Positions 7,090 through 44,600 of a stretch of DNA of 64,000 bases are shown in pieces. The notes beneath the pieces were generated by a model, which was given only the letters and a program-made list of their open reading frames with translations, ran no database searches and was not told where the DNA came from. Within the stretch, counting starts at the first letter, position 1. Each line of letters begins with the position of its first letter. Origin of the DNA: Piromyces finnis finn (Eukaryota; Fungi; Neocallimastigomycota); NCBI GenBank assembly GCA_002104945.1, contig MCFH01000061.1, positions 248,001-312,000 on the forward strand. The letters are read 5' to 3'. The translations under genes and the position numbers were made by a program.

Positions 7090-8016
7090 AAAAGAAAAAA
7101 AGTTGATTATATAAAATTTTTTTTTGAATTACCATTATAATGTATATTTTATTTTTATTCCTTTCCTATAAAATATTCATAACAAATGAATATTTAATGT
7201 AATTGTTATTCATTATTTAAGTTTAACTTTATATAGATAAAATTTAATATATATTATATTATTTTTATTATTATAATATTATTATTATATAGCTATTATA
7301 AATATTATAAATATACTTTTTTTGGATATATATATATATTTTTATTTTTATTCATTATTTTTTTGTTTAGTTTTCAATATAAACTCTTTATATATTAGTA
7401 AAATTTAATAAATATTAGTATATATTAAAAACCAATTTTATATAAGCAGAGATCTTTATATTTACTTTTGTGTTCTTTTTATGTATTTAACTCAACATCT
7501 CTATTAATTAATATAGTATGATTTATAATATATAAAATATTATGTCAATTGAAAATAATAAAAAAAAAAAGAGTATCTAGTAATTTTTTAATCTATATAA
7601 TAATTAATTATTTTTTCTTAAAAAAAAAAAGAAATTATTTATCTTCCAACACTTATTATTATATAATATATTAATTCTTATTTCTTCGTACAATAAACAA
7701 ATATTATTAAGGAAAAATAACGAATATAAATTTTTTATTTTATTTAATAAATTTTTAAATATTAATAATTTTTTATTGATATTGATAAGAGTATTGTGCT
7801 GATATAAATATAATCAATAATAAAATATATTTTATGTATTTTATAATAACATAAATAATATTATATTGAAATAAATATTATATATATTATAAATTGTTAT
7901 AAATATTGTGTGTATATAAATATAAATGCGTTGATAATAAAATTTAAAGAGTTGAAATAAAATGTTCATTTCAACAAAGATATACAAAGAGATTGTATCA
8001 TTTTAATAAAATAGTA

Positions 8017-10454
8017 TTATATATCTGGGCAAAATCCATATTTATTTTGGCATTTGTTAATGGAACAGTAAGCCGAGGTTGTTCCACAGTAGCCTTTGTT
8101 ACTACAGCATTTGTTATCGGAACAGGTTCCATAACTTTCTCCACATTTGCAACTACCATAGTTAGATTGACATCCACTAGATGATGCACAATAAGCTTTG
8201 GTTCTTCCACAATATCCTTTCTTACTACAGCATTGTCCGTCTGAACATAATCCATAGTTTTCACCACATTTACAACTACCATAGTTAGATTGACATCCGT
8301 TGGAAGAATAACAGTAAGATTTAGTTTTTCCACAATATCCCTTTTTACTACAACATAAACCATCTGAACACATTCCATAATCCTCACCACATTTACAAGT
8401 ACCGAATTCAGATTGACATCCATTAGAAGCAGCACAATGAGCATCGGATACTCCACAATAACCATGTTTACTGCAACATTTACCAGAAGGACAACTACCA
8501 AAGACACCTCCACATCTTCTTGCAGCTTCACATTTATTACCATAGTTATATTCTGAATGACTATATAATATGTTTTTATATAAGCAAAAAAACATTATGA
8601 TGTGTTATAAAATAAATATAAATATATTAATATTTTACTTTTTATTAAAATAATCTACACAATAAATAGATAAATAAATAAATCAATAATTACTTTATTT
8701 TTTGAATTTCAGCTGGAAGAGTATCAATACAATTTTTATCAATTCCTCTATAAATTTAAAAATATTATATTTAATAATTAGTATATTTCATTCAAATGAA
8801 ATAATAATGGCAGTCAGTTAAATTTTAATATTTACAAATATATAAGATTTTCTAAATTTCCAATTTCAGCTGGGACTTCCTTTATTCTGTTATCTGAAAA
8901 ATCTCTAAACACATTATTTAATTATATAAAATAAATAAAGAGATATATTTATTAAATTAAAAATTTAATAAAAAATCATATACATATGATAACAAAGAAT
9001 CTATATATATACATACAAAAATATGAGATTTTTAAGATTAGCAATTTCTGATGGAATTGTGGATAATACATTACTTTGTAAATATCTATTAACATAGTTT
9101 TAATAATTAAAGAATTAATTTTTTTGATCTTATATGTATATAGTACAATATATTTTTTTACTTACAATTGTTCAAGATTGGTAATATTTCCAATGGAATT
9201 TGGAATTTCAGTTATTTCATTATTATATAAAAGTCTATAATAAAAATTTAAATTTATAAATGTGTTAAAAAAAGCTATTTTATATATTGCTATTGGTAAG
9301 TTTATCGTTTTACTAACAAATATAAAAGATTCTTAAGATCACCAATAGTTGAAGCAATTGTAGATATTTTATTATTAAATAAATATCTATATTTTATAAA
9401 TATATATTTATATTTTAAATTTGTGAATAAATTTATATATATTATATTATATCATATAATGCTATTATTATTATAAATTTTATTCTTATTAAATTACAAT
9501 TTATTAAGACTTTGAAGATTTTTAATTTCAGGTGGAATGGAGGTTACTACATTGTTAGATAAATCTCTATAAATTGTATAAAATACATTATTTTATTATT
9601 TTATTTATATAGATGAATTTTCAATATTATTTGTTAATATTTAATATATTATATTTACAAAAAGTTAAGATTTTTAAGTTGGCAGATGTCTGATGAAATG
9701 GTAGTTAATGTATTATTATTTAATTGTCTATAGTAATTATTTTAATTAATGTTAGTATTATTATAAATATGTAAATAAATATATAAAATATTAATTATAT
9801 TATATATTATATATATAATATCTTAATTTCGTACAATGTTAAAAGATGTTCAAGATTTCCAATTTCTGGAGAAATTTTAGTTAACATATTCCTTGATACA
9901 TCTCTATAAATATATAATTTTATTATCATTAATAACTATTAATTTTAATAATCTATATTTAATATTTATATTATTAATTATTTGTTAATTTACAATGTTT
10001 CAAGGTTCTTAAGTTTTTCAATATCTGAAGGAATTTCAGTTAATTTATTATCATATAAATTTCTATTAATATTAAATATTAATAGAGATAAATAGAAAAT
10101 TAAAAAATTATTATACTTATCATAAATATGATTTAAATAAATATATAATTTTATACGAACAAGAAAGTTAAAGAGGTTATTTTATATACAAATTTTGGTA
10201 TTTCTGTTAAATCTTGATAATTTATATACCTTTTTTTAATTAAATAAAATAAAATAATTTATATTAATGGTTTTTTTTATATTTATAATTTTATATTATT
10301 TAATATATGATATATACAATTTTGAAGCATTTTTATATTTATTGTCTTCACAACTAGTAACAAGATTTCCTAATTTTTGTTTAACTTCTTTACATGAATA
10401 ACCAAAAGTTATTGAAATTAATAACCCCAAAATCAAAATAGATTTTAATATCAT
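8017..10454 (-). CDS. Secreted LRR + 4xCBM18 (hevein-type chitin-binding) protein, copy 1; 12 exons, about 451 aa
   Basis: Exon 1 is 10454-10318 (MILKSILILGLLISITFGYSC...). Nine 69-nt LRR exons: 10229-10161, 10062-9994, 9903-9835, 9727-9659, 9566-9498, 9386-9318, 9234-9166, 9085-9017, 8904-8836. A 54-nt partial LRR exon at 8747-8694, then the CBM exon 8560-8017 with four CxxxxGxCxxxxCCSxxGYCG...C repeats. All junctions are AG/GT and join in frame. Confidence 0.9.
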
Positions 10455-11111
10455 TTTATTTTTGTCCTGTATTTTTTGCTTTATTTTAAAAAGTTAATAC
10501 AATTATTATAGATTTTAAAATAAAAAATTGTAAATTTTCTTTGTTTTATTTCTTTAGATAAAAAGTATAATTGAAACTTGGTCTAATTGAAAAATGAAGG
10601 AAAAGTGAAAAGTCATTCTATTTATACTTTTTATTGAAAATAAACTTTTTATTACTTAATTAAAATAAATTAGAATTAAATAACATGATATCTGAAACTA
10701 TTTAAATATAATATTTAATTATAATATTTAATTATAATATTTAATTACCATTATTACTACTACTATTATAATTATTATTATTATTATTATTATTATTATT
10801 TACACTTGTTCATATATTAACAAATATATTAATGAAAATATTTAAATTGAAATAATTAAAAGAATTTCTTTATCAAATAGAATTTCTTCAAAATTAAAGA
10901 AATCTCTTAATTTATCTTTCTGAAATCTTATTGGTTCTAGTCTTCAAAGAATGACGTTTATCTTTTATTGATTTTCTATGAAGAGTTTATTTGTATTATA
11001 TTAAAATATATATATTATTTTTTATTATGTATAATCCAATTATAAATTAATTTAATTTTATATATAGAAAAAAGATAAAGTCTTGATAATTTTTTTTTCT
11101 ATTACTCATCC

Positions 11112-11115
<4 letters not shown>

Positions 11116-11162
<47 letters not shown>

Positions 11163-11164
11163 TA

Positions 11165-11201
<37 letters not shown>

Positions 11202-11203
11202 TA

Positions 11204-11258
<55 letters not shown>

Positions 11259-11260
11259 TA

Positions 11261-11294
<34 letters not shown>

Positions 11295-11296
11295 TA

Positions 11297-11342
<46 letters not shown>

Positions 11343-11344
11343 TA

Positions 11345-11389
<45 letters not shown>

Positions 11390-11413
11390 GTTGTTGTTGT
11401 TGTTGTTGTTGTT
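11116..11413. repeat. (ATT)n microsatellite with CTA interruptions, ending in (GTT)n
   Basis: Read directly. It produces the spurious poly-Ile and poly-Tyr ORFs. Confidence 0.97.
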
Positions 11414-12119
11414 TCAAAAGACAATATTATATTTATAAAAAAGTATTATTTCTATTTGCTTAAATAATCACAAGTTTAGTGATGAACAAATTTAAACTTT
11501 TATAACGTTTTTACTATTTATAATGAAAAAATAAGTTATTTAATAAGGCTTTAAAGAAAAAAGAATTGAATGTAACTTTTTTCAAAATTTAAATTAATAG
11601 AAAAAAAAAAAGATGGCTTGAACTTTTTTATTTAATCATTTTTAATATTAAACTGTTATCCCATTAATATTCATTTGATCTTATTTGAATTATTATTAAT
11701 TAAATTACTATTTAAATAATAATTCATATTTAAAGAATTAGAATTATCATCTTTTTTTAACATCATTACTATGACTATTACTATTTTTATCTTTTTAACA
11801 TTATTATTATTACTATAATATTTATAATTTTTATATTGCTAAGTAAATGAACTATAAATGTAAATAACCTATTATTTGATAACACGAGAAAAATAATACA
11901 TATATAATTTAAAAACTTTATATATTCTTTATTGAAATGTATATAAATACTGAATACATGAAATCAATGTCTAATACAATTTTAATTATAATGATAAAGA
12001 TGTTTGAAATAAATAAATGTTATTGTTATTAATAAAATTTAAAGAGTTGAAATAAAATGTTCATTTCAACAAAGATATACAAAGATACAAAGAGATTGTA
12101 TCATTTTAATAAAATAGTA

Positions 12120-15013
12120 TTATTTATCTGGGCAAAATCCATATTTATTTTGGCATTTGTTAATGGAACAGTAAGCTGAGGTTGTTCCACAGTAGCCTTT
12201 GTTACTACAGCATTTGTTATCGGAACAGGTTCCATAACTTTCTCCACATTTGCAACTACCATAGTTAGATTGACATCCACTAGATGATGCACAATAAGCT
12301 TTGGTTCTTCCACAATATCCTTTCTTACTACAGCATTGTCCGTCTGAACATAATCCATAGTTTTCACCACATTTGCAACTACCATAGTTAGATTGACATC
12401 CGTTGGAAGAATAACAGTAAGATTTAGTTTTTCCACAATATCCCTTTTTACTACAACATAAACCATCTGAACACATTCCATAATCCTCACCACATTTACA
12501 AGTACCGAATTCAGATTGACATCCATTAGAAGCAGCACAATGAGCATCGGATACTCCACAATAACCATGTTTACTGCAACATTTACCAGAAGGACAACTA
12601 CCAAAGACACCTCCACATCTTCTTGCAGCTTCACATTTATTACCATAGTTATATTCTGAATGGCTATATAATATGTTTTTATATAAGCAAAAAAACATTA
12701 TGATGTGTTATAAAATAAATATAAATATATTAATATTTTACTTTTTATTAAAATAATCTACACAATAAATAGATAAATAAATAAATCGATAATTACTTTA
12801 TTTTTTGAATTTCAGCTGGAAGAGTATCAATACAATTTTTATCAATTCCTCTATATTTTAATAAATTAATACAAAAACAAAAATAATATTAGTACTTAAA
12901 TAAGTCATTTTGTTGTTTAATTAAATACGATAATTTACAGATATTTAAGATTTCTTAAATTTCCAATTTCAGCTGGAACTTCCTTTATTCTATTATCTGA
13001 AAAATCTCTAAATGAATGATGTTATAAGTTAATATATAAAACCAAATTTATTTATTTAAAATATTCTAATATTTGATAAAATGTATTTACAAGTATTCAA
13101 GTTTATTAAGGTTTTTGATTTTAGATGGAATGACAGATATATAATTTTCATTAAAACGTCTGTATAATTTGTATAATTTTATATATTTTAAAAAAGATGA
13201 TAAATACAATAGGTTAAAATAATATATTTATTTATTATTATACTATTAAAAACTATTTTAAATATACATACAAATCTTTAATATTTTCAAGATTTCCTAT
13301 TTCGGATGGAATTGTCGTTAATTCATTATTATGGGAATACCTATTAAAAGATTCCGTAATTCAATATTTAATAAAATTATCTTAATCATATATTGTTTCA
13401 TATTAAATTATACATACAATTTTGTAAGATTTTTAAGATTTCCAATTTCTTGAGGAATTGATGTTAATTTATTATTTTCTATATATCTATTAATATGTAA
13501 TAATTAAATAGGTTTAATAATATAATATATAATATAAATTTATATTAAAACTTTATTTACAATTCTGTAAGATTAACAAGATTTCCAATTTTTGCTGGGA
13601 TAGATGTTAATTCATTTTGTGATATATTTCTATAACGTTTTTTAAAAATATTAATTTTATTATTATTTTTTTATAAAATATTTCTATTTTATACTATATA
13701 ATTAAATTATTTAGTATTTTTATATTTCATTTTACAATTCTTTAAAATTTGAAAATATATCAATATCAAATGGAATTTGTTTTAATTTATTATCATTTAA
13801 TGTTCTATGAGTGATATGATTAAAGTATAATGTAAAGCATTAATAAATTTACTTTTCTTAATAACACATATTTATTATTATTCTATTATATAATACTTAA
13901 AATTGTTTTAATATACATACAAATCTTTAAGCTTTTTAAGATTTCCAATTTCTGATGGAATTGTTGTTAACTTATTATTATTAAAATATCTTTATTAAAT
14001 ATATTGTTAATAACATTAAATTTTTATATAAAAGTATACATTCAAATATTTTATATACATTTACATTCAATATACTTACAAATATTCGAGATTAACAAGA
14101 TTTCCAATAGATTTTGGAACTTCAATTAATTCATTATAATATAAAACTCTAATATAAAAATTCAATTCATATTAAATAAATTATTTTATGATATTGATTT
14201 TTCTTTTTTTTTCTTTTACATTTTGACTTACAAGCAATAAAGATTTTTAAGATCACCAATAGTTGAAGGTATTTTTGATAATTGATTATTATTTAAAATT
14301 CTAATTAATATATATTTTTTAAAAATGTAAACTTATCAATAAAATAATTATATTTAATAATTATTTTTTCTTCCATAAATAAAAAAATTGTGAATAATTT
14401 TTTACAATAGCAAAAGATTTTTAAGTTTTCCAATTTCTGGAGAAATCGTAGTTAACATATTATTTGGTAAATATCTATAAACAAATTTATAAAAAAAAGT
14501 ATTAAAAATAGTGGTTTTAATAATTTTTATCATATAATATTATTAATAAAATTCTACTTACAGTTGTTCTAGATTTACAAGCTTTCCAATATCTGAAGGA
14601 ATTTCAGTTATTTTATTATTATATAAATTTCTATTTATTCATATATTAAATAAATAAAAAATTAAAATAAAATTTTAAAAGTAACAATTTTTACATTTTT
14701 ATGATTAATATATTAATACATACAAATATCTTAAGGAAGTTATTTCAAAAATAAATTCTGGAATTTCAGTTATGCCTTTAGAATGAATATGCCTTTTTAT
14801 TGAAATTAAATATTATGTAAATAATAAGTATATTAATGATTATTTCATTTACATTTATTAAAATTACAAAATTTACAATTCGTAAGGAACATTTTCTTCT
14901 TTTTCACCGCAGTGAGTAAGAATATCTCCTAATTTTTGTTTAACTTCTTTACATGAATAACCAAAAGTTATTGAAATTAATAACCCCAAAATCAAAATAG
15001 ATTTTAATATCAT
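12120..15013 (-). CDS. Secreted LRR + 4xCBM18 protein, copy 2; 15 exons, about 520 aa
   Basis: Exon 1 is 15013-14877. Twelve 69-nt LRR exons: 14792-14724, 14630-14562, 14474-14406, 14300-14232, 14148-14080, 13989-13921, 13804-13736, 13629-13561, 13486-13418, 13340-13272, 13159-13091, 13007-12939. A 54-nt exon at 12850-12797, then the CBM exon 12663-12120. All junctions are AG/GT, phase 2. Confidence 0.9.
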
Positions 15014-15271
15014 TTTATTTTTGTCTTGTATTTTTTGCTTTATTTTAAAAGTTAATACAATTATTATAGATTTTAAAATAAAAAATTGTAAATTTTCTTT
15101 GTTCTATTTCTTTAGATAAAAAGTATAATTGAAACTTGGTCTAATTGAAAAATGAAGGAAAAGTGAAAAGTCATTCTATTTATACTTTTTATTGAAAATA
15201 AACTTTTTATTACTTAAAATAAATTAGAATTAAATAACATGATATCTAAAACTATTTAAATATAATATTTA

Positions 15272-15989
<718 letters not shown>

Positions 15990-16886
15990 TACACTTGTTC
16001 ATATATTAACAAATATATTAATGAAAATATTTAAATTGAAATAATTAAAAGAATTTCTTTATCAAATAGAATTTCTTCAAAATTAAAGAAATCCTCTTAA
16101 TTTATCTTTCTGAAATTTTATTGGTTCTAGTCTTCAAAGAATTATAAATTAATTTAATTTTATATATAGAAAAAAGATAAAGTCTTGATAATTTTTTTTT
16201 CTATTACTCATCCTTTTTATTATTATTTTGTAACTTGAATAAATGTCATAATCATTTCCATTAAAACATAAATAAGTTTCTGAAATAATGACGAATGCTT
16301 CCAAAATCTATTTGTTTTTGGATTATTAATATAAAATTCAAATATGAATTTATTAGTATAATCCGTTTGGCAATACGCAAAGAATAACCTAAATGAAATA
16401 ATAATGCATTTAAATTATATTTGATTTTTATAGTTAATCCTTCATATAAAAAGTATAAAATATTTAATGTATAATAAAATACAATAAAATATAAATATAA
16501 AATAATAAATGGCATAGTATAAAATTATGTTTTTATTATTTAAATTTATTTTATCTTGTGAAAATGTTTACTTTTCATTTGGCTACAGTCACATTGTCTC
16601 ATGCCTATTTTACTATATTTTATTTAATAAAGTTTTTATTTCAAAAATATAAAAAGGATAACATGCATTGAATATAAAGACTTTTAGGATAATTGGAAAT
16701 TTAGACCAGACATAAAATAATGATTAATATGAATGTCATTAAATTAGGTTAATCAACGTTGAATACTAAGGAAAATTTAAATACATACCACTACTTCCAA
16801 TATAATGTAACTTATTATCAGAGTACAAATCATTTATATAATTTTCAATTGCTTTATTTTCACATTTAAATTTTAATAAATTAGGT

Positions 16887-37683: not shown

Positions 37684-39194
37684 CATGCGTAACGCTACTC
37701 TTTTGAAAAATTCTCTATTGGTAACTTTAATATTCATAAAGTGAATTTGTATTCACTAAAAGAATAATTCTTTATTTTTATTTATTATTTTTTTTACATC
37801 CTTTAAAAAAATACTAATCTTATTGAACCTTGAAGAATTTTAATTATAAAAAAAAAAAAAAAGTTGATATTATTATAGATCATCATTATCAAAATAGGTG
37901 TTACAATTCTGATAAAGGACAATTTCTAATTCTCAGGTAAAGTTTTTTTAAAAGAAACTAATAAAATTTAATCTTATTTAATGGTAAAAAAATAAAAAAA
38001 AAAAAAAAATTATTATTTTTGAATTGTTAGATGACTCAGGTGAGTTTAAGCAATCTAAAGTATTAAATATATTTTGTTTTTTTTTTTAAAAAAAGAAAAA
38101 ATCTAAAATTTTTTGTTTTAAAACATATTTATAAATAAAATTATACAGTATTTATTCTTGTAGTTTTATAGAAATCATATCCAAAAAACGAATGCACTCG
38201 GAAGTTAAAAAATAAAAAAATCCAAGAAACGTGTATATATAAGTTATATTGATTAAGATTTAAAATCGTTTTTATAAAAATTAATAAAATTGTTTTGTTA
38301 AAACACTAAATTGTTTTATTAGAAACACTTGTTTTTCTAATATTTAAATATTTAAAATTTTTATTTATTTAAGTATAAAAGTGATTATTAAAATTATAAA
38401 ATATTAATCTAACTATATATAATATTTCTTTATTAATAATAATAATAATGATTAAAATAAGAATATTTACATGTATTTATATTTTCTTTTAAATTTAAAC
38501 GTTTTAGAAATAGAGTAGTAACTATTATTAAATAAGAACATTTTAACAAGAATACATAATATTGAAAAAAAAAATAATGCTTTTTTTTTTTCTTTACATT
38601 TTAGTTTTTGTCATAAAAAACTTAAAACTACATTTTATATATATAAAACACTTTTTTTTTTTTTAGAAAAGGTTTATATCTATATCGCTATAATTATAAA
38701 ACATAAAATAAAAAAAAGAAATAAAAATTTTAATAATTTTTAACATTGAAGTATTTAGTTTTTAAATACATTTTATTTCAATTATAAAATAGAACTCTTT
38801 CATTAATGAAAAAAGGTATTTTGATAATTAATACAAATGAATAAATTTCTAATTTCAAACATGTTTTTATTTAAAATATTTATAATAAAAAATAGTTTTA
38901 GCTATTCATATAAATACTATAAAAATTTTTAAATATTAATAATTTTTTATTGATATTGATAAGAGTATTGTGCTGATATAAATATAATCAATAATAAAAT
39001 ATATTTTATGTATTTTATTATAACATAAATAATATTATATTGAAATAAATATTATATATATATATTATAAATTGTTATAAATATTGTGTGTATATAAATA
39101 TAAATGCGTTGATAATAAAATTTAAAGAGTTGAAATAAAATGTTCATTTCAACAAAGATATACAAAGAGATTGTATCATTTTAATAAAATAGTA

Positions 39195-41653
39195 TTATTT
39201 ATCTGGGCAAAATCCATATTTATTTTGGCATTTGTTAATGGAACAGTAAGCTGAGGTTGTTCCACAGTAGCCTTTATTACTACAGCATTTGTTATCAGAG
39301 CAGGTTCCATAACTTTCTCCACATTTGCAACTACCATAGTTAGATTGACATCCACTAGATGATGCACAATAAGCTTTGGTTCTTCCACAATATCCTTTCT
39401 TACTACAGCATTGTCCATCTGAACATAATCCATAGTTTTCACCACATTTACAACTACCATAGTTAGATTGACATCCGTTGGAAGAATAACAGTAAGATTT
39501 AGTTTTTCCACAATATCCCTTTTTACTACAACATAAACCATCTGAACACATTCCATAATCCTCACCACATTTACAAGTACCGAATTCAGATTGACATCCA
39601 TTAGAAGCAGCACAATGAGCATCGGATACACCACAATAACCATATTTACTACAACATTTACCGGATGGACAACTTCCAAAAATGCCGCCACATCTTCCTG
39701 CAGCCTCACATTTATTACCATAATTATATTCTGAATGACTATTTAAAATGTTTTTAAAAGCAAAAGTATATTAGGATTAGTTATTAAATAAATATAAATT
39801 TAAATATATATTATTTTTAAATTAGTCTACGCTATAAATATATAAAAAATAGGCAATTACTTTATTTTTTGAATTTCAACTGGAAGAGAATCAATACAAT
39901 TTTCATTAATTCCTCTATATTTTTTTGATTTAAAAAAATTATATTTTATAAATATAATATTTTATAATTAGTTCAAATGAAATAATAATAACAGTCAATT
40001 AAATTTCAACATTTACAAATATAAAAGATTTTCTAAATTTCCAATTTCAGCTGGGACTTCCTTTATTCTATTATCAGAAAAATCTCTAAGCACATATAAT
40101 TATGAAAAATAAAAATATATATTTATTATATTAAAAATTTACTAAAGAAATATATATATAAAAGAAAAATAAATATATATATATATACATACAAAACTAT
40201 AATATTTTTAAGATTAACAATTTCTGATGGAATTATGGATAAGCCATTACTATTTAAATACCTATCAGCATAGTTTTAATAATTATAGAATTAATAAAAA
40301 TATGTTAAATTTTTAAAGTTTATATGCGTATACTACAATATATTTTATACTTACAAATGTTCAAGATTGGTAATATTTCCAATGAAATTTGGAATTTCAG
40401 TTATTTCATTATTATATAAAAGTCTATAATAAAAATATAAATTTATAAAAGTTAAAAAAAAACTATTTTATATATTGTTAAGTGTATTATTTTACTAACA
40501 AGTATAAAAGATTTTTAAGATCACCAATAGTTGAAGCAATTGTAGATATTTTATTATTAAATAAATATCTATATTTTATTAATAAACATTTATATATTTA
40601 TATTTTAAATTTGTGAATAAATTTATATATATTATATTATAATATGCTATTATTATTAAATTACAATTTATTAAGACTTTGAAGATTTTTAATTTCAGGT
40701 GGAATAGAAGTTACTAAATTGTTAGATAAATCTCTATATAGTGTATAAAATATATATGTTTATTATTAGTATAATACATTATTTCCTTTTTCAATAAAGA
40801 AGAAATTTCAATACTATTTTTAATATTTAACATATATATTTACAAAAAGTTAAGATTTTCAAGTTGACAAATGTCTGATGAAACGGTAGTTAATGTATTA
40901 TTATTTAATTGTCTATAGTTATTATTTATATTTTATTCATGTTAATATTATTATAAATATGTAAATAAATATAGAAAATATAAATTATATTTATATATTA
41001 TATATATATTATTCCCATAATCTTAATTTCGTACAATGTTAAGAGATTTTTAAGATTTTTAATTTCTGGAGAAATTTTAGTTAACATATTCCTTGATACA
41101 TCTCTATAAATATTTAAATATAGTAATTTTTATAAATATTTATTTTAGCAATTTATATTATATAATATTAATAATAAAAGTCTACTTACAAAGTTTCAAG
41201 ATTCTTAAGTTTTTCAATATCTGAAGGAATTTCAGTTAATTTATTATCATATAAATTACTATTTATATTAAATATTAATATAAATATATATAATAAAATT
41301 TAAAAAATTATTATATTTATCATATATATAACTCAAATACATATATATCTTTATACGAACAGGAAAGTTAAAGAGGTTATTTCATATATGAATTTTGGTA
41401 TTTCTGTTAATTCTTGATAATTTATATATCTTTTTTTCAATTAAATAAAATAAAATAACTTTTATTAGTATTTTTTTATATTTACAACATAATATTTTTT
41501 AATATGACATATATACAATTTATAAACTTTTCCATATTTATTTTCATCACAACTAGTAACAAGATTTCCTAAGCGTTGTTCAACTTCTTCACATGAATAA
41601 CCAAAGGTTATTGAGATTAATAACCCCAAAATCAAAATAGATTTTAATATCAT
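39195..41653 (-). CDS. Secreted LRR + 4xCBM18 protein, copy 3; 12 exons, about 451 aa
   Basis: Exon 1 is 41653-41517. Nine 69-nt LRR exons: 41429-41361, 41258-41190, 41103-41035, 40912-40844, 40733-40665, 40568-40500, 40423-40355, 40261-40193, 40085-40017. A 54-nt exon at 39914-39861, then the CBM exon 39738-39195. Exon-for-exon colinear with copy 1. Confidence 0.9.
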
Positions 41654-44600
41654 TTTATTTCTGCTTTAAAAAGTTTATGTAATTACTATGAATATTGAAT
41701 AGAAAAAATAGGTAAATAATCTTTTGTTAAATTTCTTTTGATAAAAATTATAATTAAAACTTGGTCTAATTAATAAATAAAAAAAGAGGAAAAAAGTCTT
41801 TCTATTTATACTTTTTTTTTTTATTGAAAATAAACTCTTTATTATTTAATTATAATAAAATAAAATAATATGACATGGCATTTAAAACTCTTTAATTACA
41901 ATATTTAATTTAAATATTGAATTACAATTACAATATTAAATAAAATATTATTATTTAATTATATTTTATTATTATTTATAAACATTATTTACACTTGATC
42001 ATATATTAACAAATATATTAATGAAAATATTTAAATTGAAATAATTAAAAGAATTTCTTTATCAAATAGAATTTCTTTATCAAATAGAATTTCTTCAAAC
42101 TTAAAGAAATCTTCTTAATTTATTATCCTGGAATTTTATTGGTTCTTGTCTTGACAAAAGATGACGTTGATTTTGTATTGATTTTCAATGAAGAGTTTAT
42201 TCATATTATATTATGATATATATTATTTTGTATTATTATGTATCATCCAATTATAAATTAATTTAATTTTTTATATAGAGAAAAGATAAAGTTTTGATAA
42301 TTTTTTTTTATTATTCTTATTATTCCAAAGGAAATATTAATATTCATAAAAAGAATTCTTACTATTTGGTAAAGCAATCACAAAGTTAGAGATGAACGAA
42401 TTTAAAATTTTATAATTGTTTTTACTACTTTTAAGTATTGCAATGGTAAAAATAAATTCATTATTAAAATAAAATAAAAAAAGAAAGTTTTTAAATATTA
42501 TTTTATAATAATAATTACAAAAAAAAAAAGTTCTTTTAAAATAAAAAGGTTTCATTCATATTATTGAAATAATTTTGATAAAAAGATAAAAAGTTTAATT
42601 ATATATATTTAAATATTCATTATTCTATTGAAGTTCATTATTTCTCTTTTTTTTTTTTTTTTTATAAAAAAATGTCTTTTTATAACATTTAAAATAAATA
42701 AATATCTATTTTAATGAATGAATAAAAAATAATAAAATAAATAAATAACTATTTAAATGAATGAATAAAAAATAATAAAATAAATAAATATCTATTTTAA
42801 TGAAAGAAGAAGAAAGAAAAAGGAAAAATCTTTAAAATTTTTCTTTTATTAAATTTTTTATTTAAATAAACATTTCTTTTTTTGAATGTTACCTGTCACA
42901 GTACAAAATAAAAGGTTAATAGAATGAAAATGTAAAGTATTTTTTTTTTTTTTGACTTTAAAATAATTTTATTCATAAAAAAGGTTTAAGTATTTTATTA
43001 GCGATGCAATATTCAAAAGGAATTGTATATATTATTTTAGGTTTTTTTTTTTTTTTTTTCATCTAAATTATATTTATAATTCATCTATTAAATTCTTTTT
43101 TTAAAAAAAAAATTAAAGTATATATATATATATACAAATTATAATATAAAAAAAACAGCATAATAAAAAAAATAGTAAATTATAAAACAAAGCTAGATAA
43201 TATTATTAATGGATAAAATATATTATTACAGAACGATGTATATATATAGATATAATTTTTAAATATCAAAATTAAAAAATATAAAAAGATTTTATAATTA
43301 TATAATAATTTTCATTTCCAAAATACTAATTATTAAAAGGTACTTGTTAATATTGAAGAAAATTATGTATAAAATATAAATGCTTGATTTGGCCTTTTAT
43401 GTTAATAATATATATTAATAACAATGTTCAATGTGTATATTTTTGGTATTTTCATTTTTATAATTATTAAAAGGTAAAAAAAAAAAAACAAAATATTATT
43501 ATTCTATAAAAACAACAATTTATGAAAATATATAATAAAAAAAAAAGTTTTTAAAAATTATCATACTTTTTAATGAATTTATTTCTATGAATAAAATATG
43601 AGTTTTCTATTACTTGTGATTAGGTTATCAGTTTAATTCTTTTTTTTTTTTTTCAAAAAGACTGTATCCTGTGATATTTATCACATGCCTATACATAAAA
43701 ATAATGTATATTTCAAATAAATAATCAAACTACATTTTTCTATTCCAATAATATTTATTATATTTATTTATTATAATATTAATATATTCATTTATATTAA
43801 ATATTATATTGGAGGTATTTCCGTGTAACATTCTTTAACCAATAAAAATATACTATTTTTTATGTTATGCCATTCTTTTTAATATTCCATCAGTGGCTGT
43901 CAAAAAAAAATTAATTTATTATTAATATATGTATTAATATATTTAATTAGTTATTACAATATAAACTAATATAAAATAAATAATTGACATTCAATGATTT
44001 TATATTAAAAATTATCCAATACTTTTATTTAATTAATAAATTAAATGCCTTTTTAATCATGTTACACAATAACTTTATTAAATAATGATATTTGAAAGGT
44101 TGTACAATAATTAAATAAATTTTGATGTCACCTATTTTATTTATTTTAATATATCATTATAATATATTAGAATATATTTTATTATAAATATTATTAAAAT
44201 TTAATATAAATATTGATGGAGTATAAATAAATAAACAAAAAGTGTTTGTATAGTAAATGTAAGAGTAAATGTAGATGTAATAGTAGTCATAATAGATGGT
44301 TATAATAGTTGTAATAGACGTAGTGGTAATAATAATAGATGGTTATAATAGTTGTAATAGATGGTTATAATAGGTAATAATAACATAATAGGTCATAGTC
44401 GTCGTAGTCATAATAAATATATTGTAAATATTATAAATCGTATGTACAATATTGATACATTATTGGTTTAACGTATACATTTTAAATGAATTTATTTTCC
44501 ATAATTTTATATTAAATTTTGTAAATAAAATAAATTACTATTATTACTCTTACTATTTTTATTATTAATAATAAACATCTTTAATGTTTATAATAATTAA

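Follow-up and report, generated by a model that had tools for sequence, protein, structure and literature searches.

Proteins that combine leucine-rich repeats (LRRs) with CBM18 chitin-binding modules are common in the Neocallimastigomycota, where they are found in Anaeromyces, Neocallimastix, Orpinomyces and Piromyces. These proteins (named 'RNI-like', 'L domain-like' or chitin-binding type-1) have the same architecture of signal peptide, LRRs and C-terminal Chitin_bind_1 repeats as the products of three paralogous genes, c1, c2 and c3, which all lie on the minus strand of a 64,000-nucleotide stretch of Piromyces finnis DNA (assembly GCA_002104945.1, contig MCFH01000061.1, positions 248,001 to 312,000; hereafter the window, from the first letter of which all coordinates are counted) and which share the layout of a predicted secreted LRR and chitin-binding protein. 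The second copy, c2, is a mosaic, the two ends of which are of c1 type and near-identical to those of c1, while the LRR core that they enclose is divergent. c2 aligns end to end with the LRR-CBM18 proteins P0151 (36% identity, E 6e-82) and P0074, both of which have precomputed Pfam matches to LRR_8, LRR_4 and LRR_1. Within the wider family c1-c3 form a subgroup of their own, the closest LRR parts found being at most 44% identical. Another LRR-CBM18 protein of P. finnis, P0192 (438 aa), is encoded by a gene of exactly 1317 nt and is therefore intronless, whereas c1-c3 devote one exon to each repeat.

Several described systems invite comparison with this locus. In lampreys and hagfish, the variable lymphocyte receptors (VLRs) are encoded by incomplete germline genes, to which somatic copying from the hundreds of cassettes beside them adds the missing part. 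Like the VLR genes, the copies described here have constant 5' and 3' parts around a variable LRR array; unlike them, they are three complete germline genes with no cassettes in 64 kb and with a divergence that is evolutionary in age. In plants, the Cf-4/Cf-9 Hcr9 genes form a tandem LRR cluster with sequence exchange and variable repeat number. RPP8 (PMC6771003) and the coffee SH3 cluster (PMC3113787) are reported to be tandem plant LRR resistance genes that undergo sequence exchange. The plant clusters resemble the present one in their tandem LRR paralogs, in chimeric genes that arise by exchange and in repeat-number differences beside a conserved remainder. However, they share no homology with c1-c3 beyond the LRR fold and include a membrane or NB-ARC part, whereas the products of c1-c3 belong to a fungus, have CBM18 modules in that place and one repeat per exon, and would presumably function as chitin-anchored secreted LRR proteins. 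Interlocus gene conversion with a 'peak of divergence' in duplicates has been reviewed with the genes for red and green opsins as an example (PMC3924837). There, as here, paralogs are near-identical over part of their length by exchange, a divergent region escapes and the phylogeny differs by segment. In the opsins, though, the introns are homogenised and a short exon is divergent under selection, whereas in c2 the whole 2-kb core is divergent, introns included.

The three genes are as follows:

8017-10454, minus strand: c1, 12 exons, 451 aa; colinear with c3 over its full length
12120-15013, minus strand: c2, 15 exons, 520 aa; putative signal peptide, N-cap, twelve 69-nt LRR exons, then a 54-nt exon and an exon with four CBM18 modules
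39195-41653, minus strand: c3, 12 exons, 451 aa; the reference that reveals which parts of c1 and c2 were exchanged

The gene models were built from the reading of the minus strand with GT-AG exon borders; the reading frames are open and every splice site of c1, c2 and c3 conforms to GT-AG. In each copy exon 1 is 137 nt long and encodes a hydrophobic leader and a Cys-containing N-cap; the putative N-terminal signal peptide, as read from sequence only, is MILKSILILGLLISITFGYS, followed by a Cys. There follow nine LRR exons in c1 and c3 and twelve in c2, all of exactly 69 nt and phase 2 and each encoding one 23-residue repeat with the consensus LxLxxNxLxxIPxxIGxLxxLxx. This array, the single exons of which match LRR_4 no better than E 0.005 in Pfam, is N-terminal to the CBM18 part and leads through the 54-nt exon to a 544-nt exon with four CBM18 modules, which scores 93 bits against PF00187 (Chitin_bind_1; cut-off 27.8) in four stretches.

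Identity between c1 and c2 reaches about 99.4% over two tracts, one of 758 nt at the 5' end (c1 11125-10368) and one of 818 nt at the 3' end (c1 8752-7935), which divide c2 into three segments:

14927-16227, minus strand: 5' tract of c2, near-identical to c1 10368-11125; promoter, 5' untranslated region (UTR) and first 29 codons
12856-14926, minus strand: divergent core of c2, from the remainder of exon 1 through intron 13
12030-12855, minus strand: 3' tract of c2, near-identical to c1 7935-8752; 54-nt exon, last intron, CBM18 exon and 85 nt of 3'UTR

In the 5' tract the first 29 codons show no difference in 87 nt, and the proximal 355 nt upstream contain three substitutions and two small indels. 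Farther upstream, as far as c1 11125 and c2 16227, there is one more substitution; c2 also lacks 88 bp by deletion and has an expanded (AAT)n run of about 650 nt (about 15350-16000), compared with about 50 nt in c1. A separate (AAT)n run of about 285 nt (11126-11410) sits at the outer edge of the c1 tract. The 3' tract, which begins at the acceptor of the 54-nt exon and ends 85 nt beyond the stop codon, contains five substitutions and one 8-bp indel in 818 nt; of the 133 positions compared between intron 14 of c2 and intron 11 of c1, which lie in it, 132 are identical. The substitution level is thus 0.54% in the 5' tract (4 in about 740 nt) and 0.61% in the 3' tract, while the synonymous divergence (dS) that separates c1 from c2 amounts to 0 for the first 29 codons and to 0.035 for the 3' coding part. 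When the differences are polarised with c3, c1 carries derived states at 10694, 8685, 8074 and 8021, and c2 carries its own at 8560 and 8272 (c1 numbering) as well as 4-bp and 88-bp deletions. Because each copy has its own derived changes, c1 and c2 are two separate loci that have aged apart by about 0.6%.

The likeness ends abruptly on the inner side of both tracts. The first differences between the two copies fall at c1 10367 / c2 14926 and at c1 8753 / c2 12856, and when two breakpoints are sought with a maximum chi-square scan, the switches come out at c1 10374/10367 and 8755/8753 (chi-square 211, a value reached by none of 300 permutations). The near-identical ends and the sudden limits near 10368 and 8750 that the initial annotation had reported from the sequence are therefore borne out. 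Inside these limits the LRR exons of c2 are 70-91% identical to their matched partners in c1 and c3 (9-30% of positions differ), and introns 1-13 of c2 score at background against all introns of c1 and c3, the exception being part of intron 3 against c3. There the 5' half of the c2 intron (14515-14561) matches intron 3 of c3 (41145-41189) and not that of c1, with a local score of 35 against a background of 8-20; this likeness may be either a small patch of older exchange or the result of a change specific to c1.

The third copy shows which parts were exchanged. c1 is colinear with c3 (c1 7749-11523 against c3 38923-42434), with exons 86-97% identical and introns 87% identical when pooled. In a three-way alignment, the informative sites at which c1 agrees with c2 and those at which it agrees with c3 number 61 and 7 in the 5' tract, 34 and 219 in the core, and 41 and 1 in the 3' tract, and Fisher tests on these ratios give p values of 7e-33 and 3e-28. 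The grouping consequently flips along the gene: the partner of c1 is c2 in the two end tracts but c3 in the core. Synonymous divergence agrees with this: dS is 0.36-0.38 between the c2 core and c1 or c3, 0.14 between c1 and c3, and about 0.03 between the ends of c1 and c2. Within the tracts c1 and c3 are 0.90 identical in the distal promoter, 0.83 in the proximal promoter and 0.80 in the last intron, while elsewhere they are 0.74-0.97 identical in the core introns (0.87 pooled) and 0.82 in the flank common to c1 and c3 only. Because the distances between c1 and c3 in the tracts fall within the range of the core introns and the flank, c1 looks like a uniform gene of the c1/c3 type and c2 is the chimera, with c1-type ends set on an older core. 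The changes in the core are spread over many positions, and a concentration on the concave face of the LRRs is not evident.

The repeat arrays were compared by an identity matrix, a maximum-likelihood tree of all 30 LRR exons and approximately unbiased (AU) tests. Because the core introns of c2, with the exception of intron 3 against c3, carry no signal, exon homology is judged from the 69-nt exons themselves. Two blocks stand out:

13091-13804, minus strand: c2 exons 8-12, five LRR exons without a counterpart in c1 or c3
9498-9727, minus strand: c1 exons 5-6, also present in c3 and without a counterpart in c2

The tree supports the clades of c2 exon 2 with exon 2 of the other copies (100/99), of exon 4 with exon 4 (96/94), of c2 exon 5 with exon 7 of c1 and c3 (97/95) and of c2 exon 13 with exon 10 (97/90). 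c2 exon 6 adjoins exon 8, a pairing that is not rejected when constrained as a clade (p 0.26), whereas c2 exon 3 with exon 3 (57/69) and c2 exon 7 with exon 9 (53/69) are best matches for which the tree gives no resolution. The initial annotation had proposed six such pairs, of which 4 with 4, 5 with 7 and 13 with 10 have the support of the tree and 6 with 8, 3 with 3 and 7 with 9 stand as best matches only. Its further statement that c1 exons 5-6 and c2 exons 8-12 lack counterparts is upheld by matrix and tree alike: c1 exons 5 and 6 each pair with the c3 exon only, and c2 exons 8-12 have no partner. Simple colinear divergence, for which it had suggested an exon tree as the test, fares poorly, forced colinear pairings being disfavoured (exon 6 with 6, p 0.019; 7 with 7, p 0.048; 5 with 5, p 0.08). 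The arrays therefore differ by one two-exon block and one five-exon block and are otherwise colinear. Because every LRR exon is 69 nt long and in phase 2, whole-exon insertion or deletion keeps the frame, and the difference between twelve and nine repeats is one of whole-exon insertions and deletions. As to 'exon loss plus gain', the two-exon and five-exon differences are real, but their direction is not polarised, no outgroup having been found. Within c2, exons 7, 10 and 11 share a GTATGT donor and have the highest exon identities of the array (56-57/69); exons 11 and 7, the resemblance of which had already been noticed, are the closest pair (57/69), without tree support. An internal duplication of these three exons was considered and rejected, since the tree does not support it and introns 7 and 11 only reach the top of the background range.

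The opposite groupings in adjacent segments and the presence of neutral DNA within the tracts support the view, also taken by the initial annotation, that the pattern is due to recombination or gene conversion; selection or chance does not account for it. It is proposed, with moderate confidence, that c2 is a germline chimera produced by non-allelic gene conversion between tandem paralogs; conversion is inferred rather than a double crossover, and two events rather than one. According to this proposal an older paralog would already have stood about 0.9 kb upstream of c1 with its own 12-repeat LRR core, the lineage of which would have split from that of c1 and c3 about 2.6 times earlier than c1 split from c3. 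The 5' end of this paralog, comprising the promoter, the 5'UTR and the signal peptide, would have been overwritten by c1 in a tract ending in exon 1. Its 3' end would likewise have been overwritten by c1, in a tract that starts at the acceptor of the 54-nt exon, takes in the CBM18 exon and reaches the 3'UTR. The inner limit of the 5' tract is the variable N-cap and that of the 3' tract is intron 13, which cannot be aligned, and each tract would have halted there as likeness to the partner collapses. The core would be out of reach of further exchange because its similarity has been lost, while the ends, kept alike by function, would remain exchangeable. The combination of constant ends and a variable core thus needs neither selection nor a dedicated mechanism, in this proposal or in its main rival, because pairing would fail at the inner breakpoints and loss of similarity alone suffices to halt exchange at the core.

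A simple tandem duplication does not fit the locus, as the 904-nt spacer (11126-12029) recurs neither upstream of c2 nor in the downstream flank of c1. There is also a trace of exchange between the two more distant genes:

7749-8451 in c1 and 38923-39629 in c3, minus strand: tract shared by c1 and c3, about 99% identical; last approximately 430 nt of the CBM exon, 3'UTR and downstream flank

All three copies are about 99% identical over the final 430 nt or so of the CBM exon and the 85 nt of 3'UTR that come first after it; c1 and c3, 31 kb apart, are in addition 99.5% identical over another 186 nt of flank downstream. Compared with about 87% in introns elsewhere, this 3' tract is the product of a second exchange, which spans 31 kb. 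It shows that conversion acts in this family and in this way supports conversion of the c2 ends.

Several observations weigh against conversion of both ends. The two tracts are equal in age (0.54% and 0.61%), for which a single event would be the simpler account. The tracts end on their outer side in non-coding DNA, where an old paralog should lack the similarity needed for conversion; it may be conjectured that a conserved upstream element and the (AAT)n run were the source of that similarity. Over the 56 codons made up by the 54-nt exon and the initial 110 nt of the CBM exon, dS between c1 and c3 is 0.38, above the core value, which makes the direction of the 3' exchange uncertain: transfer of c1-type sequence is clear for the 5' tract and only probable for the 3' tract. 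Finally, no orthologous locus or further paralog was obtained that would give an independent record of the 'old' c2.

A possible though less likely alternative is that c2 is a recent duplicate of a 3.2-kb unit of c1 (7935-11125), the core of which was later replaced in one tract, starting at codon 30 of exon 1 and running through intron 13, by an unsampled diverged paralog (a 'cassette replacement'). The equal divergence of both ends, with 4 substitutions over about 740 nt and 5 over 818 nt, is what a single duplication would leave; both inner breakpoints lie at or beside conserved coding sequence, where a foreign donor could pair, and the outer limits of the similarity between c1 and c2 would simply be the edges of the duplicated piece. 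However, c2 is not adjacent to c1, and the intervening spacer is duplicated on neither side, so that an extra event is needed. Nor has a donor been seen: the window contains only three copies, and a search of representatives with the CBM exon, searches of the clustered protein collection and a scan of metagenome and metatranscriptome contigs gave distant family members only, with LRR parts at most 44% identical. The absent donor is nevertheless weak evidence, as the searches were blind to c1-c3 themselves, and the blank from the clustered protein collection says little, since that collection lacks both the 192-aa public product of c2 and the matching frame of c1.

Much less probable is an artefact of assembly or polishing by which c1 sequence was pasted onto another gene, an outcome that the initial annotation had named as one that would overturn its reading. 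Near-identical repeats 4.5 kb apart in a genome of about 85% A+T are indeed hard to assemble, and the DNA of the window is itself 75-89% A+T. The tracts nonetheless differ by nine substitutions and by several indels, and each copy has derived states of its own. The junction in exon 1 is also represented in independent data. Of the 37 possible 31-mers in a 67-nt stretch across the breakpoint, 30 span the junction and only four are common to c1; two were sampled, and each is present in a DNA run as well as in two RNA runs, which come from separate studies and date from 2017 and 2022. In addition, 88% of the words of the c2 stretch are found in the contigs of the DNA run, and the public annotation begins a c2 model at the same ATG. 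The exon 1 junction of c2 is very probably real and transcribed, and a chimera of assembly is accordingly made unlikely, at this junction in particular.

Programmed diversification in the manner of the VLRs, in which constant ends would serve as handles and LRR modules would be drawn, possibly somatically, from cassettes, is highly improbable. The constant ends around a variable core and the frame-neutral exons of one repeat each would suit such a system. Yet c2 is a complete, spliceable gene with canonical introns and an open 520-aa frame over 15 exons, the divergence of its core is old and includes the introns, and RNA contigs very probably carry the germline exon 1 junction. Orphan LRR cassettes were sought outside the three genes by an LRR motif scan of the 64 kb, which returned 33 hits inside c1-c3 and three spurious hits elsewhere, two of them with stop codons. 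The comparison with VLRs made in the initial annotation can thus be retained as a figure of speech only, and its statement that the 'recognition module turns over' was too strong, the c2 core being an older lineage (dS 0.36-0.38 against 0.14) with exons that are otherwise colinear. What is seen is ordinary recombination between gene copies and not programmed receptor assembly; nothing suggests somatic assembly or a bank of cassettes.

That no exchange occurred at all, and that old duplicates have kept their ends under purifying selection while the LRR core evolved fast under diversifying selection, is hardly credible: the ratio of nonsynonymous to synonymous divergence (dN/dS) does rise from 0.05-0.14 in the CBM exon to 0.46-0.67 in the LRR exons, but an intron, UTRs, 750 nt of promoter and synonymous sites all lie within the shared tracts, the introns of the core cannot be aligned, and c3 groups with c1 in the core but not in the ends, a pattern that rate variation cannot yield, so that selection alone is refuted by the intron comparison and the three-copy comparison.

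The locus offers no new mechanism; it adds an example of a familiar type of event, from a fungal lineage that has been little studied. As such it is a clean and well-bounded case of segment-limited exchange in an anaerobic gut fungus, a group whose microsatellite-rich genomes of about 85% A+T are seldom studied at such detail. LRR-CBM18 copies do not evolve as units, and trees built from the chitin-binding end or from the promoter would mis-date their duplications. As the LRR core is the part that differs between otherwise identical neighbours, c1 and c2 make a natural pair for testing LRR binding. A more speculative and rather unlikely extension is that the LRR-CBM18 genes of gut fungi constitute a germline-diversifying repertoire of wall-anchored recognition proteins, in which the conserved ends, with promoter and signal peptide on one side and the chitin anchor on the other, would act as recombination handles and whole LRR cores or single frame-neutral repeat exons would be swapped between paralogs. 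If true, gut fungi would have their own equivalent of the dynamics of plant R-gene clusters, which would provide new binding specificities towards plant, bacterial and methanogen partners.

With regard to the existing annotation, the model of c1 used here is the same as the public 451-aa model. The public annotation of c2 is split into a 322-aa LRR model, which reads through the donor of intron 13 to a stop codon at 12935, and a separate 192-aa model over the CBM reading frame. By homology with c1, c2 would encode one product of 520 aa, and the public split probably misses a full-length LRR-CBM18 protein.

Other parts of the window are duplicated as well. They comprise an inverted pair at 95.8% identity with intronless reading frames of 808 aa and 806 aa, a direct pair that is 84% identical, and a direct repeat that is 92% identical; the coordinates of these further duplications are 4217-7119/25094-27991, 353-2368/22567-24562 and 55708-56562/57474-58329.

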